Assembly: GCA_047495785.1 (NCBI GenBank)
Contig: JBLDXI010000029.1
Coordinates: 372,001-436,000 of the forward strand
Source: Lepidodermella squamata
Lineage: Eukaryota > Animalia > Gastrotricha
Direction: 5' to 3'
DNA length: 64,000 nt
Shown: positions 7,601-40,016 of the stretch, one piece after another
How the letters are laid out: every line of letters starts with the position of its first letter
Numbering within the stretch: the first letter of the stretch is position 1
Position numbers and translations under genes: made by a program
The notes under the pieces: model-generated
What the model was told of the DNA's origin: nothing
The model's input: only the letters and a program-made list of their open reading frames with translations
The model's database searches: none

Positions 7601-10600
7601 GATGTGATTTCGGCGAAAAAATTGCCCGGCTCCGAGGCAAATAGCCAAAGTACCGACCCGATTATTGGATATCGAGCTAATTACTACGTCAAGCTTTTCG
7701 ATCGAATTCTTGCACTGCAGACAATGGGTAAATTCTGTTAAAATTATCACAAATTTCATAAATCCTACAGAGATGGAGGCTTGAAATTCTCGAAAAGATG
7801 TTATTTTGATAAAATATTCAAAAAAAATATGTTGAAACGATAATTTGAGGGGTTTTTTCGATGAAAAGTACTACGGAATATTCGGTAATAATATGAATTA
7901 GTGCGGGTATTTCTTCACATCATCTCGGATTATTTCATATTTTTTCAATTTTTCCAGATTTCAATGAGATTAAATCAATGCTGAACAAGCTTATTCTGGG
8001 CGCGATGCGATCGAGTGGCAAATCCGACGTCGCGAATACCTATTCGAACCTGATAACTAGATCAGAAATTGTCGTGCCAACAGAAACGGGTCTGTTCGCC
8101 TCGTTTTCGGCCTCGCTCGCCTCGGTCGTTACGCTTCGCCGCCGTTTTGAAATGACCGCGAATCCTCGCCAAATCAGCGCGTCGTTCCACCCGATTATCG
8201 GTCTGGCCGGTGAAAGCCGTGCCAACATTGAGCTGCCCTTCCTACGACAAGGCCTGGCAATAACTGGGGACCTTAGATTCGAACTGCCTCTCAACGCAAA
8301 GGGCGAAGTCGAGCAGTTGAAATCGGGTGATAAATCGCTGAAAATCACGATCGAACCGCATGATAGGGACCTTGAAATTTTTAAATCTTCAATTTCTACA
8401 GTGGTTTTCGAGGAATCACTCAAGCGTGACCTCGTTCTGCCGCAATCAGTGCAGCGCGACGATAATTCAACCTTCGACAAATTATTGCGTGACGATTTCA
8501 AGAAACCAGAACGAATTCGCGCGATCGGAAATCGATTCGAAAAATCGATTTGTTCATCGCCGTCTCGCTGTTCAATGAAGCGTATCGAAGCTGGGCTGAC
8601 AATGCCATTCTTAGGCTGTAGAATGATATCTGAAGTTATTTACAACGAAAGATCGCCGCCTGTTTTCAGCGGTCCGATGAAATTCCGTTTGGTTCAGAAA
8701 AAATCCGCGGCCGAGCCATTGATTGTCCGAATCCAGGCCAAAACGCTGGAGGACATTACCGCTCAAGATGTCATGACCCGACTGGAGAAAATGACTGGGG
8801 TTAAATTGGGCGACAAATCATTTATGGATTCATTATTGCCGCGAAAAGATCGCTTCACTGCCGACTCGGAATTCGACCAGCCGGAGGACAGTGAGGAGGA
8901 AAATGCCGAAAAACCCGAAAAAACCCGAAACCAGGAAAAAACCGAAAATTCTGAAGAAAAGCCGGAAGAAAGTGAAGCGCCAAAGGCTTCTCATCGCGCC
9001 CTCTCGAAAGAGGCTGAGCAAAGTGAAAATTCAGAAAAAACCGAAAATTCCGATAAACCCGAAAAAACCGATGATTCATCATCCAGCGAGGAGGACAATT
9101 CCGAAAACGAGCAAATTCAACGCGAACGCGACTTCGTTGTTAAAGATGCTCGCGATTTCGATATGAATGAGCTTCGATCGCGTTACATGGGCGATTCTAA
9201 GGTGCGCATGCAGGTCCTCCAGTTGGATGCGAAAGTTGGAAATCGGACGGCGAAATGGGCGCTAAGTGTCACGCGCGGGCCTCGCGTTTTTATTACGCGC
9301 AATTACTTTGAGGTGACACCTTTCACGCAAGTCTACAAGGCACTTTGGGAGACTCTTCTTCCTAGTAAGTTCAATTTTTGTTAGCTTGCTTCACTCTAAA
9401 AATGGACTGTATCATAAAATCTTAAATTAATTAAAGAATAAATTAAACAAAATAGTTTATCTTGGGAATTTTATAAAGTTTAAAATAAATTGAATGTTTG
9501 GATTAAATTTCAAATTTCAAATTTCAAATTCCAAATTTTCAAATTTTAATTTTTAATTTTAGACAAATTTATTAAATGTCCTTTTCCTCTTAGTTGAGAA
9601 AGATATTGGCCACGTGATCCGAACAATCACTCCAGACGACCTGAACTCAGTCACCGACCTGCCTTCGTACCAACTATGGCGCTATGGCAAAAATTTGGAG
9701 AAGCGCATTTCAATCCAACTGAGGGCTCAACCTCGCCGTAAGCAAATCCAGCCAAGCGAATCCAAGGCGGCAGATGACAGTTTCTTCTACCGTATGATGG
9801 ACGAAAACAAACGCGATGATTTGAATGAAATAACGCGCGAAACAATCGCGACTTACAGATCTGCGCTTCAAGCTGTCCCAGAACTTATCCAGAGCTTCGA
9901 ACGCTGCATTTCGCAGGGGAAATTCGGGTTCGATAGTTGCACGGAGACTAAGACTGAATATGTTTATTCATGCTTGGCTGAGCATGTCGGCGAGATTGCG
10001 GCTGAAATGGGCCAGCGAGAGCGTGAACAACTCAGACAAGAGCAAATTGTCAAGGTCGATCGGTGCATTGAGCGAAAATTCACTGATAAGCTGTATTTAC
10101 GCGATATTTCTATCTACATTGCTTATGACCGGGTAAGATTGTTGTCAACTTAGGAATCAAAAATTTAATTTGAAATAAAAAATTAGAAAGCCCCAATTAA
10201 TTAACAGTAATAATTGTGAAATTTTCCAAAATTTTGACTTTGAAAAAATTAAAAATTTACATTTCAAATTTTTTAAATGTCCCAACATCTATTTTAATTA
10301 AATTTGTTCAATTTCAAGAATCCGGTGAATATAATGATGCATGAGATATTAAATTAGAAGAATTCCTTAGAAACACTATTCGAAAAAATCTCAAACAGGG
10401 TAAGCTAGGAATTGTTTTTGTGTTCACGCCCCCACTGATGGGGGTGAGCCGAATCCCGGAGGCACTGCAATACCGGGCCGACTCTTGGGCAGGGTCCAGC
10501 AAGCTGGTGTCACCTGCCCGGCTAGCCAAAAATCGGGCTAATATCGTAGGCCCCACATGGAGGCCGTTGTAGATATTAAACTACAAAGAACAGATACTAC

Positions 10601-13295
10601 ACTTTGATCATAGCCAAAAAGGCCGAGAAGCGATAAAGAAAGGGAGTAGGCCGGAATATTCCGGACCGTGTCTCGGGCTGAGTACACTCTCAACTGGTCA
10701 GTTCTTATGCATATGCTAGCTAATCAAAAAAATTAAAAAATTAAAAATAAATATGTGTCGTATCGCAATGAGCAATTCTTCCAATTGCCGATAGAGATAT
10801 CTCTAACCCCGATCTGCCCAAGATAGCTGCATAGCCTAAAGAGATATCTCTATGGCAATAAATAGTGGTTCATAGAGATATCTCATTGAGCAATAATTTT
10901 ACTACGACACGTGCCGTTTAGGAGACAAGCGTTTAAGCTTTTATAAGTTTTTAATACAAAAAATTTAGAAAACATTTATCAAAGTAGTTTAAATCAGAGA
11001 CCCATATTATAATGCCTAAAGCTTTATTGCCCAAAGATTTAGCGGAGAAGGAGCTGTTCATTAAAGCCTGTAGTGAAAGTGGAAAGGTTGATGGTGTTAC
11101 AGCCGATTGCAAGCACAACCTGAGGCATTTGTTTTGCGTTGTTGGCGGTAAACTGAAGTACCGAGAAGCCGAACAAAAACAAGCCGAAAATTGGCATGTC
11201 CTGGTGATGGACACCTTCTTGGAACGTGCAAAGAAGTACCACACCGAGAATAGCCACGCTGGATATAGCGCCGTAGTAGCCTTTTTTAAGCTTTTTAAGG
11301 AGGACGAAGCTGAAGGGTGCCGTTGCAAGTCTGGGTGCAAGTCAACAACAAAACGTTGCGCATGTCGTAACTGGAAAGTTGGCAAGGTCCTGCAGCCTAT
11401 GAAATGTGGTCCTTCCTGTTTATGCTCAAAAACTAATTTTTGCGAAAACAAGTAGTTGATGTGTTTTTCGACATCTATCGATGAGTTTGAGTAATGAAAA
11501 TGAAGAAGATGTGAATAGAATGATTTATTTTTAATATTTCGTTAATAAACGTCGATATTATGTGTTATTGCTCTAAGAGATATCTCAATCGGCAATAATT
11601 TATTGACAATTTATTAATTTGCTCAAAGGAGGCCCCCTTTAAGCAATTGCTAATAGAGATATCTCTATCGTCAATTGGAGGAAATTGCTCATTGCGATAC
11701 GACATATGCATAACTCAAAAATGTGCGTCAGCCGGGAGTCGAACCCGGATCGGCTGCTTGGAAGGCAACCATGCTGACCGTTACACCACTGACGCCGGAT
11801 GATATCGCGTGCGTTTAATTAGCACTAGCTTCAGACACGCAAAGCCGATAGCAAACCTAGGTTTTTCATTATTAAGGGTCTCTTGCGCAGGCTAAATTGT
11901 GGATTTTATTTATATTATTTGTATTTATATTTATATTAATTTAATTTATTGAGATTCAGTTGAATGAAGTTCTTTATAATTTAGGTTCCCCAGCCGTTGA
12001 ACGATGCTTTTTCAGCCATTTTAAACACCTTCAACGTCCTTCGCCAGGGTCAATTCGAGCCCGCGAATTACCGCCCGGGTCGTTTGGTCGCTAAAGTTTT
12101 GTACTCGGACGACAATCGCCACTTCGACTACATCCTCTACCGCCACAAATACGTCTACAAAGCCTTCAATGTACCATCTTTCATCCCACCACCCAACCGC
12201 GTTTATGGTGTCATGCCGTTATCGGCCTCGTTTCAAGATTTGATCGCTAATGAATACCCGACTATTCAACGCCCGTTTTGCAAATTGTCAATACCTGAAA
12301 TTGCGAAATCAGGCCGGGAAGTGTTTGATAAGGCGTCGTTAAGGACCTTCGATGGCGCCGATTTTGAGGTCGCCCTACCGCAAAAACACCTAGCTATCCT
12401 CGCATCAACTTGCGATCGAAAAATTGATCAAATTATGAAACCCCAGAGCGATCAAACTCCAGTTAATTTTGTAGCGATGGAGCGTGACGGTAATCATGAT
12501 AGGAAGGCAGTTGTGCGTGTCGGAAATGTGTTATATCGAATCGACAATCGCTGCCAGGTCGAAATTTCGAACTTGACTGCGACTGATCTTAATCGTCACA
12601 GTGTTCCGTCCACTTCTGATCAAAGTTTGATCACCCTGCGCAAATTTGAGGACGGCGATTGCCACATCTATGAAAAATCCACCGGTATCGAGGTTTATTT
12701 TGACGGCCATGATATCAAGGTTATAACTGGCCGATTGAGACTTCGTTCCGCCTCACTGAACTGTGGATTATGTTCGGATTTGAACGCCGATTTAAAGGCA
12801 AGAAATGAGGTGAATGATCCGGTCATTCGTCGTAGCAGGGTGGATCAATCGGTTTCGCGATATTGCCCGGCTCTAAATAATGAGAATGGCTACACTCAGC
12901 GAGAAGATGATGATGACTTCGAACAGACGGCTGAGAAACAGGGATGGAAATCCGATGACTGTAATTTGATCTTCAAAACTAATGTTGAGATCAAATCGGA
13001 ATCAAAGCGAATCTGCTTTTCGAGCAACGCTATTCCGGCTTGTCCGAGCAAGGTAATATATGTGTAAATATTCAAAACAATCCGTAAATTCTTAAAATTT
13101 CAGTGCCGCCCGATCAAAACTCGACTGGAAAGCGTTGACATGACCTGCTTGGACGATACGGCGGAAGCTCGCGAACTGGCTCGCCGCATTGCGCTGTCAG
13201 ATAACGGTCTGAATTTCGGCCTTTTACGCATCTATGCTCACCCGAGCATGGTCACCGGGCCTTATCAGGTGCCAATTGGTTGCGAACGAATTTAA
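4645..13295 (+). CDS. Vtg: Vitellogenin / large lipid transfer protein, ~1859 aa (exons 4645-4753, 5050-6139, 6388-6562, 6728-7727, 7958-9364, 9594-10132, 11985-13052, 13104-13295)
   Basis: Signal-peptide exon MSNKALRACFLVALIICQIIVAAMA. LPD_N motifs KEYVYDYET, WSLNLKKGLLQLLQL, E.SPIGTCDTLY, ALAAVGNAG, VRIAAY, E.SSNVASFVRSHL. VWD motifs LRTFDG and CGLCSD. Vtg-type C-terminus ICFS..IPAC..C..MTC..VPIGC. All seven introns are GT-AG with consistent phases. Confidence 0.9.
10441..10634 (-). ncRNA. RNU2: U2 spliceosomal snRNA gene (antisense, in vitellogenin intron 6)
   Basis: Minus strand reads ATCGCTTCTCGGCCTTTTTGGCTATGATCAAAGTGTAGTATCTGTTCTT..., with branch-site recognition sequence GTAGTA, Sm site GATTTTTGG and stem-loop IV loop ATTGCAGT. 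About 194 nt; 3' end approximate. Confidence 0.95.
10756..11704 (+). mobile_element. Non-autonomous Ginger2-like DNA transposon (949 bp)
   Basis: ~50-bp TIRs TGTCGTATCGCAATGAGCAATT...AGAGATATCTCTA. TGT..ACA termini, 4-bp TSD TATG (10752-10755 / 11705-11708), and repeated subterminal palindrome AGAGATATCTC. Confidence 0.85.
11012..11455 (+). CDS. Internally deleted transposase remnant: partial integrase Zn-finger (H-x4-H-x-G) fused to a CXC Cys cluster; no DDE core
   Basis: YHTENSHAG followed shortly by GCRCKSGCKSTTKRCACR...CGPSCLC...CENK; lies entirely between the TIRs. Confidence 0.7.
   Translation: MPKALLPKDLAEKELFIKACSESGKVDGVTADCKHNLRHLFCVVGGKLKYREAEQKQAENWHVLVMDTFLERAKKYHTENSHAGYSAVVAFFKLFKEDEAEGCRCKSGCKSTTKRCACRNWKVGKVLQPMKCGPSCLCSKTNFCENK
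11724..11795 (-). tRNA. tRNA-Gly-TCC: tRNA-Gly (TCC)
   Basis: GCGTCAGTGGTGTAACGGTCAGCATGGTTGCCTTCCAAGCAGCCGATCCGGGTTCGACTCCCGGCTGACGCA. Perfect 7-bp acceptor stem, anticodon loop CTTCCAA, GTTCGA T-loop, and a T5 terminator just downstream. Confidence 0.96.
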
Positions 13296-32845: not shown

Positions 32846-35800
32846 TCAGCCTAGGCCGTAGAGCAGGGCGAGGCGTTCGCGCAGCGGCGGCGGAAACTGC
32901 GCCTGGCACCGCGACCAGTTCTCGTCGCCCATCTTCGACTTGAAGCCGTACAAGATGCGCGTGAACAGGTCGCGCAGGTCCTCGCGGGGCGACGCCCACG
33001 AGGCGATCGCGTCGCACAGGTGGATGAAGTCGGCGATGTCGCGGCACGCCGCCTCCGGGTTCTTGATCACCAGCACGCAGATGCCGCGGAACGCAGAGTC
33101 CTTCTCGTCGTTGTCGCGGATGTTGCGCAGCGAGGCGCACCAGTTGCGCAGGAAAGACGCCAGGTAGGGCGCCACGATGTCGGGGCACACCAGGCCGAGT
33201 CGACCAATAGTGATAGCTGGACAAAGGAAAATATACAAAAAATTAAGATAATTCGTCGAAATGTGGAAAAAAGTATATAAAATAGAAAATTCTTATCTTG
33301 AGGATGAAACGATTTTTTCGAATATTTAAAAAATTATCCTCGAGAAATTTTGATCAGAAATTGGAACGTTTGATATCACAGATTATCATAGTGAGCTGAG
33401 TGTGTCATCATTGGAATTTTTTTAATAAAATAACGATCAACTACACTTTCTATTTACCTGTATTTTCGAGAAGAGTTTTCGGAGTAGTTGGCCGGTTGAT
33501 TATTTCGATGAGAGGCGGCAACAACGCGGGAATATAATCGGCCATTCCGCTATCTGAAACCATTGAAAAATCAATTTATAGCCCAATTTCTCAAAAAATT
33601 AATGTGGATAAAAATAAAATAAAAATCTCAGACAGTACGAATACAATAAAATCATAGGCCTTCATAGTGAGCTGAGTAGTAGCATCATAGAAAATCCTAA
33701 AATCTCCAACTACGACAAGGAAGCAACTCACTCATTTTGACGGCAATTTCGCCGATGGCCCACGTCGCATTGTTGCACACTGAGATGTTGACCGGGTCGA
33801 GGTTGATGGCGAGTTTCTGTAGGAAGTCGTGCAGGCATGGCCGGACTCGCTCGAAACACGCTTTCGTTAGATCGCCCAACAACGCAAATGCACTTTGCCG
33901 CACCTCAGCCGTCGGATCCTTTCAATTCAAAATAGTCACAAATTTAATCATCTGATTTGAAACTGGAGAAACCCCAAAAATAAAAGAGTGAAATTGACAA
34001 AATCAGACAGTACGAATACGATAAAATCAGAGATCTTCATAGTGAGCTGAGTAAACATCATTTTTACGAGCCCCGACGTCAAATAAATCAGAGCAGAAAA
34101 TTCATAAATAAAATTGGATTTCTTTGACTTCGAGTTGGCCCTTGTCAATCTTAATTCAGATAAAATCCCTTTAATAACTTACATGCATGCAGTGAAAGAG
34201 CAGGGTTAAAATTTCTGATTGTTCCACCAACTGCTGAATATTCGAACCGAGACCCTCAGCCAGGCCAGATAGCAGATCCAACGCCACGATAATAAAGTCC
34301 TTATCCGGCTGTTCGTACTTGTCCGGATTCGCCATATGCGCCACTCCCTGGTGCTGCGTTTGTTCGATTAGCGAAATGCACCGCTGATAAACGGGCGGGG
34401 CGTAGGGCAGGAAGCCTTCTTTCAACGCCGTAGCTACACTGGATAGGCATTCGAGGAGAGGGAAAAGCGCTTTGTCGTCGTCCTTCAGTTCGTTCCATTT
34501 CTTGATTAATGGCGGCATCATCAACTGAATGAAATCCTGAAACGAAAAATCACGAGAAAATAAGTAAAAATTTGAAAAATTCAAACAAAAAATTGAATAA
34601 GATTCAAAATCAGGAGATCATACTGTCATCAAAAGATCAGGAAGAGAGAGTTGCGATCATCACATATGAAAGCGAAGAACGAGCTTCTATTTCCAGACCA
34701 AATTAGGTATCGATTACTTAATACCGAATAAATACCGTAAATTCAAGGAAAAGACCAAGATTTGGGCCAGGAAATCATATCTTCCAGCCTATTCTTTCTC
34801 CGGGAATAAAATTCATTAAAATTTGGGGTGACAATTTTGCGAATCTTGTCTCGTTCTCAAATTGAACTCTCTCGATGAATTTAGTCTAGAATTGAAACTC
34901 TTCCTTAGCCAAATAAAGATAACGATAAATTTCAAGAAATTCCTTACCTCTCGATTTAGAGCCGGGCCAACGGCATCGGCCAGCGTTCCGACTGCATCGT
35001 ACAAAATCAGTAAATTCTTCTGCTGGTACTTCTCAAAAGCAGCAACAAGCGTCTGTAAGATATCGCCCAGATACGGCACCAAATGCCCGGCTGCCTCTTC
35101 CTCGAGGGTCGCAAAGGCAGAACACGCCGCCTCCTGAACCCGCTTATTCGGGTCCAAAATCCGCCTCAACAGCTCTTGGACCAACGGATTCAGGTACACA
35201 TCGTGCGGCTGCTGGACTATCCAGTGAGCGTAGCGGGATAGAGTCCAGCAGGTTATCGATCGGACCAGAGGCTTCGCGTCGGAGAGGCATTGGATCAAAA
35301 ACGGGACCAGTTGCGGCAGGTGGGGGATCATGCCGCCCACACAACCCTCGGCTATCGCTCCGATAACCAAAATCGCAGACTCGCGGACCTCCCACTTCGG
35401 CGACTCGAGCATTTCGTTGAGGACTGGCAGGATTGTCGGGAGAATCGCCTCGCGGAACACCCCGGATAGCACGTCCAACGCAGCGGCTGAGCATTTTCGA
35501 AGATTCCAGTCTGATAGCGACGATTCGTCGAATTCCTCCTCGCACTCCTCGTCCAGCAGGCCCAACTCGTCGTTCTCGTCGTTTTCCTCCAGATTTTCGA
35601 CGTTAGAATCGAGGGAAGCAGCTGTTTGGCCAATGTTATGAACCTTCGCCCGATGGTACCGGGGTCTGATGTCATTCGGGTTGTCCGCCTGCTTCGAATC
35701 GTCCTCGTCAGAATTGCCATGCAGTAGGATGATGTCAATCTCTGAATAACGCATGTTTTTCACCAATATCGGGATTAGCCGGCCGATGTAAGGGTGAAGG

Positions 35801-37091
35801 ATCGAGCCGCATAGCGGCAGCTGCTCGGCTAGGGCAAGCCAGAACTCGCAGGCCTCGAGGGAGACTGACTCGTCTGAATCACCGGTTCGCTGCATCATGT
35901 ACTCGATAACGCCGTCGATGTGTTGCATCAAGATGTCGGGCTTGATTTCGAGCAACATCACGAAAGAGTGGCACACGTTCTTGCGAACATCTGAATCTTC
36001 ATCGTTCGCAAGGTAGAAAATGTTCTCTAGAAACTGCTCCAAATGCGGCATCAGTGTCTGCGACCGGCTCAACATGAACTGATTCACACAGGCCAGAGCA
36101 TGAGTCCTGTAAAAATAAACACCACAATCAGAGCCGGAATAAATAAATAAAACCCAAACGATCTATTCAAAAGAACGATTCAGAAAAAAATTGGCATCAA
36201 TTTTCGAGAAATCAGTGAGAGAGTTCATAATTCATCACTAAAAAGCTTAGTCAAGATCTGAAATATTTCATCAACTTACTTTATCTTAGCACTCTGATGT
36301 CTGAAGAAGAGGAAAAACTTCGGTAGCAGTATGTTGAGAGGTTTATCTTCCGCAGTCGAGTCGTCTGCGTCGAGTTGAGATGCGCAGTCTTCGCAGATTT
36401 TTCGAAGAGCGCCGAACGCGCCTTCGCAGACGTGGTAATCTGGTGATTCGAGGCATTGGCAAATGAAAGGCAGTAGTTCAGGCCAGTTTCGAAGGTCTCC
36501 ACGCATGACGATAGTTGATATTAAGATGCCGACTGTGGCTCGTATTAGAGGCGACGCGTCTCCAATGCAGTTCAGACATTCTTGCTTGATGTATGAGACA
36601 ACTTCTTGCGGTAAGTGTTCGAAGTGCATTCGAACATTATTTTTTAGTATCAAACCACTGAGCGATCGAGTAGGTTCATCTGCAATAAAATTCAGGATTA
36701 GAAAAGGAATGAATAACACTTTGTAAACCATTTAGTGGCTACCAAATTCAGCAAAGAAATCAGAATCATAAGGATCATAGAGAGAGTTCAAAAACTCATC
36801 ACAAATACGTATAAACTAGAAATCAGTAACAAGATGTGATTAAATACCTTCTGTTTTTAGCCGTGCGAGCACGAACATGAGATAATTGCTAAAATCAGGA
36901 AACCGGTTGAACTCTTCCAATTTCTAATAGCAAAAGCAAAACAGTGAGCAATTTTCAACTCCAGGGCAATGGATAAAAATTACCTGCTGTACACGCCGCT
37001 GAGTCTCGGTGTTTGGAGACTGACTTTCCTTGAGCAACTGGATGATTTGGCCGAGGGCCGCTTGATCTGGCTGCCATTCCATCATCCTCAT
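32846..37091 (-). CDS. TNPO1: Transportin (karyopherin beta-2), 8 coding exons
   Basis: [30 protein letters not shown], acidic loop then [74 protein letters not shown]1 versus TNPO2 cannot be distinguished in an invertebrate. Confidence 0.97.
33350..33416 (-). ncRNA. Box C/D snoRNA: D' guide for 28S (SNORD29/snR71-equivalent site) and D guide complementary to U6 snRNA
   Basis: ATGATGA-CACACTCAGCTCACT-ATGA...TCAAACGTTCCAATTT-CTGA in the last transportin intron. Confidence 0.85.
33624..33693 (-). ncRNA. Box C/D snoRNA, double guide (28S SNORD29- and SNORD41-equivalent sites)
   Basis: ATGATGC-TACTACTCAGCTCACT-ATGA..ATGATT..GTATTCGTACTGT-CTGA; D box ~75 nt from the 3' splice site. Confidence 0.88.
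33998..34066 (-). ncRNA. Box C/D snoRNA, double guide (paralog of 33624-33693)
   Basis: ATGATGT-TTACTCAGCTCACT-ATGA..CTGATT..GTATTCGTACTGT-CTGA, with an AAAA/TTTT terminal stem; ~85 nt from the 3' splice site. Confidence 0.88.
34605..34668 (-). ncRNA. Box C/D snoRNA, SNORD26-like register
   Basis: GTGATGA-TCGCAACTCTCTCTTC-CTGA..TGATGA-CAGTATGATCTC-CTGA; the D' guide pairs with 28S GAAGAGAGAGUU. Confidence 0.88.
36176..36243 (-). ncRNA. Box C/D snoRNA, SNORD81-like register
   Basis: GTGATGA-ATTATGAACTCTCTCA-CTGA..TTGATG..CTGA; ~73 nt from the 3' splice site. Confidence 0.88.
36744..36807 (-). ncRNA. Box C/D snoRNA, SNORD81-like register (paralog)
   Basis: GTGATGA-GTTTTTGAACTCTCTCT-ATGA..ATGATT..CTGA; ~67 nt from the 3' splice site. 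Confidence 0.82.
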
Positions 37092-39355: not shown

Positions 39356-40016
39356 ATGGCCATCAGATCTTTGCTTATCACCGCCGTCATTGTACAGTGC
39401 ATTGTACTGGTTTACGCATATTGTGTTGGAAGCAGCGATAGCCAGGCTCAAAAGCCTGTCACAGCTCAAGCTCGTCTGTGGCCTAAAGGTCAGCCGTCTT
39501 TCGCTGGCGAGACTCCGGTTGGAGTCATCGACTTCGAAGAAGTAACAAACAGCGATGGAAGTGTATACACTCTGGTAATTATTTATTAATTTCGAATTTA
39601 TTAATTTCAATTTAATTTTGTTTTCTCAGGTTCGAGGTCGAATTACTGGAATTGCGCCAACTGATGCGCTTCATGGTTTTCACGTTCACGACTCATTGAA
39701 TTTTACGAACGGCTGCGACTCGACCGGCGGGCATTACAACCCAACGAAGCGTGACCACGGCGATATCGGAAATGCGCACGATGCGCGGCATGTCGGCGAT
39801 TTGGGCAACGTGCTCGCCGATTCTCACGGCGTGGTCAATGTCAACCTGAAGGACACTGTCATCCGCCTGAGTGGACCGACTGTCAACAACATTCTTTATC
39901 GCGCCTTGGTTATCCACGCTGATAAGGACGATTTGGGCCTCGGCGAGTCGGCGGCGAGTAAATTGAACGGAAATGCGGGCAAACGCCTCGCGTGTGGCGC
40001 AATCATGAAAAACTGA
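39356..40016 (+). CDS. SOD3: Secreted Cu/Zn superoxide dismutase, copy 1 (exons 39356-39574, 39630-40016)
   Basis: Signal peptide; HGFHVH, GCDSTGGHYNP, HG, RHVGDLGN, LVIHADKDDLG and GNAGKRLACG, so all Cu/Zn ligands and the catalytic Arg are present. Confidence 0.93.

Follow-up and report, generated by a model that had tools for sequence, protein, structure and literature searches.

An intronic box C/D snoRNA of Lepidodermella squamata with a predicted 28S rRNA guide and a candidate guide for U6 snRNA

We have analyzed a window of 64,000 nt (64 kb) from the genome of the gastrotrich Lepidodermella squamata (GenBank assembly GCA_047495785.1, contig JBLDXI010000029.1, positions 372,001 to 436,000 of the forward strand). 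The subject of the analysis is a box C/D small nucleolar RNA (snoRNA) gene of ~68 nt, here called copy A, at window positions 33349-33416 on the minus strand. Copy A is one of three paralogs, A, B and C, that occupy successive introns of a transportin gene, on the same strand as this host. The sequence comparisons suggest that copy A is, on balance, a functional intronic dual-guide snoRNA. The guide upstream of its internal D' box (the D' guide) would be directed at 28S ribosomal RNA (rRNA) and the guide upstream of its box D (the D guide) at U6 small nuclear RNA (snRNA), the present form having arisen by duplication and replacement of the D guide. For the D guide itself, U6 is the best supported target and probably the true one, a reading whose basis is comparative: the same guide recurs in unrelated snoRNA genes of other organisms.

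Copy A, its paralogs and their transportin host

The anatomy of copy A can be read directly from the sequence, and a relaxed Rfam match agrees with the location. In the 5' to 3' direction of the minus strand there is a C box of the RUGAUGA type near the 5' end (AUGAUGA, 33405-33411), a 15-nt D' guide (33390-33404), a D' box (AUGA, 33386-33389), a C' box (UGUGAUA, 33374-33380, also supported by alignment of the paralogs), the D guide AAACGUUCCAAUUU (33358-33371) and, near the 3' end, a CUGA D box (33354-33357, also located by string search). The terminal boxes and the internal D' and C' boxes of a box C/D snoRNA are thus all present, and the two guides measure 15 and 14-16 nt. The core of the D' guide, CUCAGCUCAC, occupies 33391-33400 and is separated by a single U (33390) from the D' box, as placed by the Rfam alignment; the 15-nt element as a whole ends in CUCAGCUCACU, after which come AUGA, a short spacer and the C' box. 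The D' box is degenerate, as it is in the SNORD29 consensus. Immediately 5' of box D stands the element CGUUCCAAUUU, and a string search of the window finds the 15-mer CGTTCCAATTTCTGA at this one place only (33354-33368, minus strand). An external terminal stem of five A-U pairs (AAAUU/AAUUU) can be drawn by eye and is absent from the minimum free energy fold, and the guide is unstructured in the fold prediction.

The paralogy of the three copies is equally direct. Copies B (33623-33693, in the intron 33554-33731) and C (33998-34067, in the intron 33918-34181), both on the minus strand, combine a D' guide of the SNORD29 type with a D guide resembling that of SNORD41. A block of 16 nt, ACTCAGCTCACTATGA, which comprises the SNORD29-type guide and the D' box, is common to all three copies, and the whole 15-nt D' guide is identical among them. 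The spacers and flanks differ. Since the D' guide is shared exactly despite this divergence, it and the boxes appear to be under selection. The D guide is the point of departure. Directly before the CTGA of copies B and C stands GTATTCGTACTGT, their SNORD41-type guide before box D being GUAUUCGUACUGU, and in the same place copy A carries its complement to U6. The shared block and the replacement of GTATTCGTACTGT bear out the original prediction that copy A is a paralog which has kept the 28S guide of its relatives and changed the other.

The snoRNAs of the window surface in an Rfam scan only at relaxed E-values, below the gathering thresholds. Copy B matches SNORD29 at 39.2 bits (E 2e-5); copy C matches SNORD41 at 37.4 bits (E 9e-5) and SNORD29 at 23 bits. 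Copy A, with the lowest Rfam score of the three copies, matches SNORD29 (RF00070) at 26.5 bits (E 0.046), well below the gathering score of 48. The D' core CUCAGCUCAC is of the SNORD29/snR71 type and is presumably aimed at the conserved segment GUGAGCUGGG of the large subunit (LSU) rRNA. Because this guide matches and the remainder of the RNA does not, copy A would work like SNORD29 on its D' side without being a member of that family.

The host is a transportin gene of the TNPO1/2 type (32846-37091, minus strand), recognized from its open reading frames (ORFs), from homologs named transportin-1 and transportin-2, and from spliced RNA contigs. In a protein search the product is ~60% identical to its arthropod and vertebrate counterparts. 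Three public sequencing runs, X1 and X2 among them, were found, all in the form of contigs, and X2 is RNA-like. Contigs of X2 are spliced at the exact GT..AG borders of the introns that harbour the three copies, and three upstream introns are removed as well. The last of the transportin introns (33217-33457), which hosts copy A, is among those skipped. The splicing of the host is therefore observed directly: the transportin gene is expressed and its introns are real. Copy A has the setting of an intron-encoded snoRNA, with one snoRNA per intron, an expressed host and the sense orientation.

The D guide and its recurrence outside the window

The D guide of copy A forms 11 Watson-Crick pairs with the U6 segment AAAUUGGAACG, at positions 1-11 upstream of box D (33358-33368). 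The U6 sequences used were those of a termite (PMC10256727) and of Arabidopsis (U6-26, PMC8053127 supplement). Both contain AAAAUUGGAACGAUACAGAGA, that is, AAAUUGGAACG directly 5' of AUACAGAGA. Since the segment stands next to ACAGAGA in both, the perfect 11-nt complement directly before box D, on which the original prediction was built, is real. On either U6 this exceeds the 10 contiguous pairs, abutting or adjacent to box D, that are asked of a U6 methylation guide, and the target is the nucleotide opposite the fifth position upstream of the box (the D+5 rule). This position, 33362, pairs with the second uridine of AAUUGG, or U27 of the Arabidopsis U6 reference. The predicted duplex has an energy of -13.9 kcal/mol, and U6 is the best target found for this guide. 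For copy A and all five of the related guides described below, U6 gives a better duplex energy than the nearest candidate segment of 18S rRNA.

RiboMeth-seq has mapped eight 2'-O-methylated nucleotides (Nm) in the U6 of Arabidopsis; the first, U27, is assigned to the snoRNA SnoR167 (Wu et al. 2021, PMC8053127, Table 3). Counted on the U6 reference of that study, it corresponds to the second uridine of AAAAUUGG, the same nucleotide as the one predicted for copy A. The uridine that the original prediction had derived from the D+5 rule therefore coincides with a methylation mapped in a plant (Um27). The name snoR167 also occurs in PMC5122169, where it denotes a monocot cluster and has no U6 content.

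How often such a complement would arise by chance can be estimated. The probability of an 11-mer match at a fixed place, summed over ~95 registers of U6, is ~2-4e-5 per guide, a value that is small for a single guide and is not negligible over a scan of many genomes. Because many snoRNAs and genomes were scanned, the comparative evidence weighs more than this figure.

A second animal snoRNA, present in two related animals from marine metagenomes, lies at L024:1640-1715, where a PPM1D-like PP2C phosphatase gene has a GT..AG intron flanked by two exons. Its D guide and box D, AAACGUUCCAAUUUCUGA, are identical to those of copy A at 18 of 18 nt, even in the three A's that are left unpaired on U6. 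The D' guide, UUCACGAUUUUGC, with U and CUGA after it, complements the insect-type U6 3' segment GCAAAAUCGUGAA over 13 nt, so that the D+5 position falls on the second A of GCAAAAUCGUGAA. Both guides of this snoRNA are therefore complementary to U6. An ortholog lies in the same intron of a second species (L031:3445-3525, also L032-L034), which is 94% identical in the upstream exon; these sequences were found by protein search with that exon and come from European Nucleotide Archive (ENA) marine metagenomes, one of them from Tara Oceans, and from one Logan assembly. The two species agree completely in the C box, the C' box, the D' guide with its D' box (19/19) and the D guide with its D box (19/19), while the spacer, the stretch that follows the C box and the flanking intron can barely be aligned. 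This pattern, a direct observation of guide conservation, is the one expected of working guides. A PPM1D-like relative that is 81% identical (L035) has the intron and no snoRNA in it, and no such guide was seen in L036-L039, some of whose contigs are too short to judge. A search of the 64-kb window for a repeat of the L024 type found none. The PPM1D-intron snoRNA resembles copy A in its identical 18-nt D guide and box D, its intronic position and its animal host; it differs in its D' guide, which is directed at the 3' part of U6 whereas that of copy A is directed at 28S, and in its host gene, and the remainder of the RNA cannot be aligned with copy A.

The same guide was sought in metagenome contigs of the JGI, using as pattern TGATGA, 30-60 nt and then CGTTCCAATTTCTGA. 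Twenty-seven loci were found, of which four groups have the full box C/D architecture. About half of the loci are single or clonal matches in GC-rich or coding, prokaryote-like DNA with no snoRNA features, and the number of prokaryote-like matches is, by a rough estimate, about that expected by chance. Those at L004/11/15/16, L005 (which sits within an ORF of 344 aa), L006/18/28, L009/29, L012, L014 and L019 were attributed to chance on account of their prokaryote-like composition and their lack of snoRNA architecture. The fourth group is the PPM1D-intron snoRNA of L024; the other three are plant-like and lie on AT-rich contigs. The largest comprises 11 contigs (L007, L008, L010, L013, L017, L020-L023, L026 and L027); its snoRNA of 60 nt (L008:5470-5550) has a perfect terminal stem and is preceded by a promoter of plant type, with a site II element (TGGGCC/GGCCCA), a telo-box and a TATA box. 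The other two are represented by one contig (L025:884-937) and by L030:4320-4373, whose contig also matches the plant family MIR5269 at a score below threshold. In all three the pairing with U6 runs past the 11 nt enforced by the pattern to 13-14 pairs, and the extension fits U6 and not 18S rRNA. None of the metagenome snoRNAs with the U6 guide matches an Rfam family at E<=1. The plant-like groups are probably, and most simply, SnoR167-like genes of plants. The search among other invertebrates and plants that the original prediction had proposed has thus yielded the PPM1D-intron snoRNA in two animal species and three plant-like groups.

Alternative readings and other features of the window

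A dual function of copy A has to be weighed against several observations that count against it, the first being the length of the pairing, which ends at 11 bp; the AAA 5' of the complement adds no further pairs. Others come from a close relative of the window species. Searches were made with the last transportin exon and with an exon of 423 aa (full-length transportins fell outside the length filter of the search), and they returned one close relative only, on ENA metagenome scaffolds (L001-L003) with 82-87% amino acid identity in transportin. This relative has snoRNAs in two equivalent transportin introns (L001:9258-9319 and L001:9726-9792), both with a SNORD41-like D guide and with D' elements unlike the SNORD29 type. 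In 20 kb of its sequence there is no U6 guide and no SNORD29-like guide, and the intron equivalent to that of copy A contains a snoRNA with the SNORD41-like D guide. Moreover, the intron of copy B (33554-33731) is absent, the flanking exons forming a single exon (L001:9402-9683), so that species ~85% identical in protein have gained or lost an intron that bears a snoRNA. From these differences in introns and guides it appears that the guides and one snoRNA intron have turned over since the divergence of the two lineages and, as the relative keeps the SNORD41-like D guide alongside different D' elements, that D' guides have been exchanged between them.

One alternative is that copy A has an orphan D guide, decaying after the triplication, that the 11-nt fit of this guide to U6 is accidental and that only the 28S D' guide works. 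We regard this as unlikely, although it has points in its favour: there are three copies of the 28S guide and two of the SNORD41-type guide, leaving no need for the D guide of copy A; the relative is without the U6 guide; and over very many windows an occasional 11-mer match between a guide and an snRNA is, by estimate, to be expected. Against an accidental fit stand the identical 18 nt, with the three unpaired A's, in a snoRNA of other animals, where they have been kept beside a second U6 guide although the intron has diverged. An accidental fit also has to accommodate a target nucleotide that is a mapped Nm in Arabidopsis (PMC8053127) and a guide that is still framed by intact C' and D boxes.

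Less likely again is a pseudo-copy, silent or poorly processed, that looks intact but forms no stable small nucleolar ribonucleoprotein. In favour of this, copy A is ~130 nt from the 3' splice site as against 69 and 80 nt in the paralogs, its terminal stem is limited to about five A-U pairs, and its Rfam score is the poorest of the three. Furthermore, copy A is covered by no X2 contig and a contig of X1 merely touches its bin. X2, however, appears to consist of contigs of spliced mRNA, among which a snoRNA of 68 nt is not expected, and the four boxes and the 16-nt D' block have remained intact although the spacers and flanks have diverged.

As to a better rRNA target, which the original prediction had named as a possible objection, the nearest candidate found is the 18S segment UAAUUGGAAUGAG; it pairs with positions 2-11 of the guide over 10 bp with one G.U, almost as well as U6 but more weakly (-11.4 against -13.9 kcal/mol), and would place the methylation on the second U of its own AAUUGG. 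We know of no Nm at this uridine of 18S rRNA in yeast or human, which counts against such a target. We consider it the most doubtful of the alternatives since, although the segment exists (it is carried by 18S rDNA primers, PMC10574230), the energy is within the range of working guides and copy A is otherwise an rRNA snoRNA, the related guides all fit U6 better, the extra pairs of the plant-like guides fit U6 only, and the PPM1D-intron snoRNA couples the guide with a second one that likewise complements U6.

Several other features of the window may be recorded. Three further introns of the transportin gene, upstream of those with copies A, B and C, contain SNORD81-like box C/D snoRNAs on the minus strand with the guide GAACUCUCUC. 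One was located by a relaxed Rfam match (34603-34671) and the other two by reading of the guide in the sequence (~36195-36260 and ~36760-36815). With these three beside A, B and C, the transportin gene is host to two triplicated snoRNA families. In the same part of the gene, X1 has two contigs for one intronic stretch (36066-36201 and 36653-36782), one of them identical to the window and the other ~9% different; the exons differ by ~1.5%. As two differing contigs cover one stretch, the sample behind X1 may have had very high heterozygosity or been a mixture of close lineages. Elsewhere, a full-length U2 snRNA gene (10439-10634, minus strand, 160.8 bits) and a tRNA gene ~1.1 kb from it on the same strand (11724-11795) are the only features of the whole window above the Rfam gathering thresholds. 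The ORF at 39618-40016 (plus strand) encodes most of a Cu/Zn superoxide dismutase, with Sod_Cu-type look-alikes in the ESM Atlas. For one ORF of the window a look-up of the exact product gave no match.

Proposed function and comparison with known guides

If copy A is a dual guide for 28S rRNA and U6, it would be released from the last transportin intron of the pre-mRNA and, with fibrillarin and the other core proteins, would direct two 2'-O-methylations. Its D' guide would lead to methylation of the LSU rRNA adenosine that is served by SNORD29 in human and by snR71 in yeast. Its D guide would pair with U6 5' of ACAGAGA, on the assumption that the animal has the conserved sequence found in termite and Arabidopsis, and would lead to methylation of the second uridine of AAUUGG (Um27 in Arabidopsis), which we take to be U32 in human U6 numbering. 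Copy A would have originated by duplication within the family of three intronic paralogs, and the redundancy of the family, with three 28S guides and two of the SNORD41 type, may have left the D slot of one copy free to acquire specificity for U6.

A more general proposition, to which we give slightly less than even weight, is that methylation of this U6 uridine exists in animals and that some marine invertebrates serve it from at least two unrelated snoRNA genes, one a dedicated double guide and the other an rRNA snoRNA with a captured guide. If so, the mark would either be an ancient eukaryotic one, lost in vertebrates and yeast, or have been gained independently in plants and animals. U6 is at the catalytic core of the spliceosome, and the map of its modifications comes mostly from mammals and yeasts and now from Arabidopsis. 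The predicted ribose methylation adjoins pseudouridine 31 of human U6. The transportin locus also appears to illustrate guide turnover at close range, in which redundant, duplicated intronic snoRNAs allow specificities to move between rRNA and snRNA.

What may be new here is a guide for the AAUUGG mark of U6 in animals, present in two unrelated snoRNA genes. In addition, the alignment of the three copies shows clearly that intronic paralogs have exchanged a guide. The original prediction had suggested that the mark might be undescribed in animals; our literature search, whose coverage is incomplete, found no animal report of methylation at the second U of AAUUGG, but the mark itself has already been described in plants. 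The U6 methylation guides that PMC3884663 names for Drosophila are mgU6-47 and mgU6-68.

Dual guides for rRNA and U6 are not new either, and the view of the guide swap as a novel link between ribosome and spliceosome was overstated. The mammalian mgU6-77, a dual guide for U6 and 28S, dates from Tycowski et al. 1998, as cited in PMC6298559 and PMC3884663. In Arabidopsis the snoRNA U27 serves 18S A28 and U6 A43, and SnoR53Y serves 18S A801 and U6 A48 (PMC8053127). All three resemble copy A, as proposed here, in that U6 and rRNA are served by one box C/D RNA; they differ from it in the nucleotides concerned, which are C77 of U6 for mgU6-77 and A43 and A48 for the two plant RNAs, and in their rRNA sites. 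SnoR167 is the counterpart of copy A with respect to the predicted target, being the box C/D guide to which that same uridine, 5' of ACAGAGA, is assigned in Arabidopsis. The likeness is one of target, and SnoR167 is from a plant. The plant-like metagenome snoRNAs have a single guide, ~60 nt, independent transcription and 13-14 bp of pairing, whereas copy A lies in an intron, has 11 bp of pairing and carries a 28S guide in addition.

The closest relatives of copy A as an rRNA guide are SNORD29 (U29), with its yeast equivalent snR71, and SNORD41 (U41). The D' guide of copy A, with its CUCAGCUCACU and AUGA, matches the guide of the SNORD29 consensus, although the score of 26.5 bits against a gathering score of 48 sets the two apart, and the D slot of copy A is occupied by the complement to U6. 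To our knowledge, the D-guide slot of human SNORD29 has no target. The D guide of SNORD41, GUAUUCGUACUG, is found in paralogs B and C and in both snoRNAs of the relative (L001), and this element is exactly what copy A has lost.

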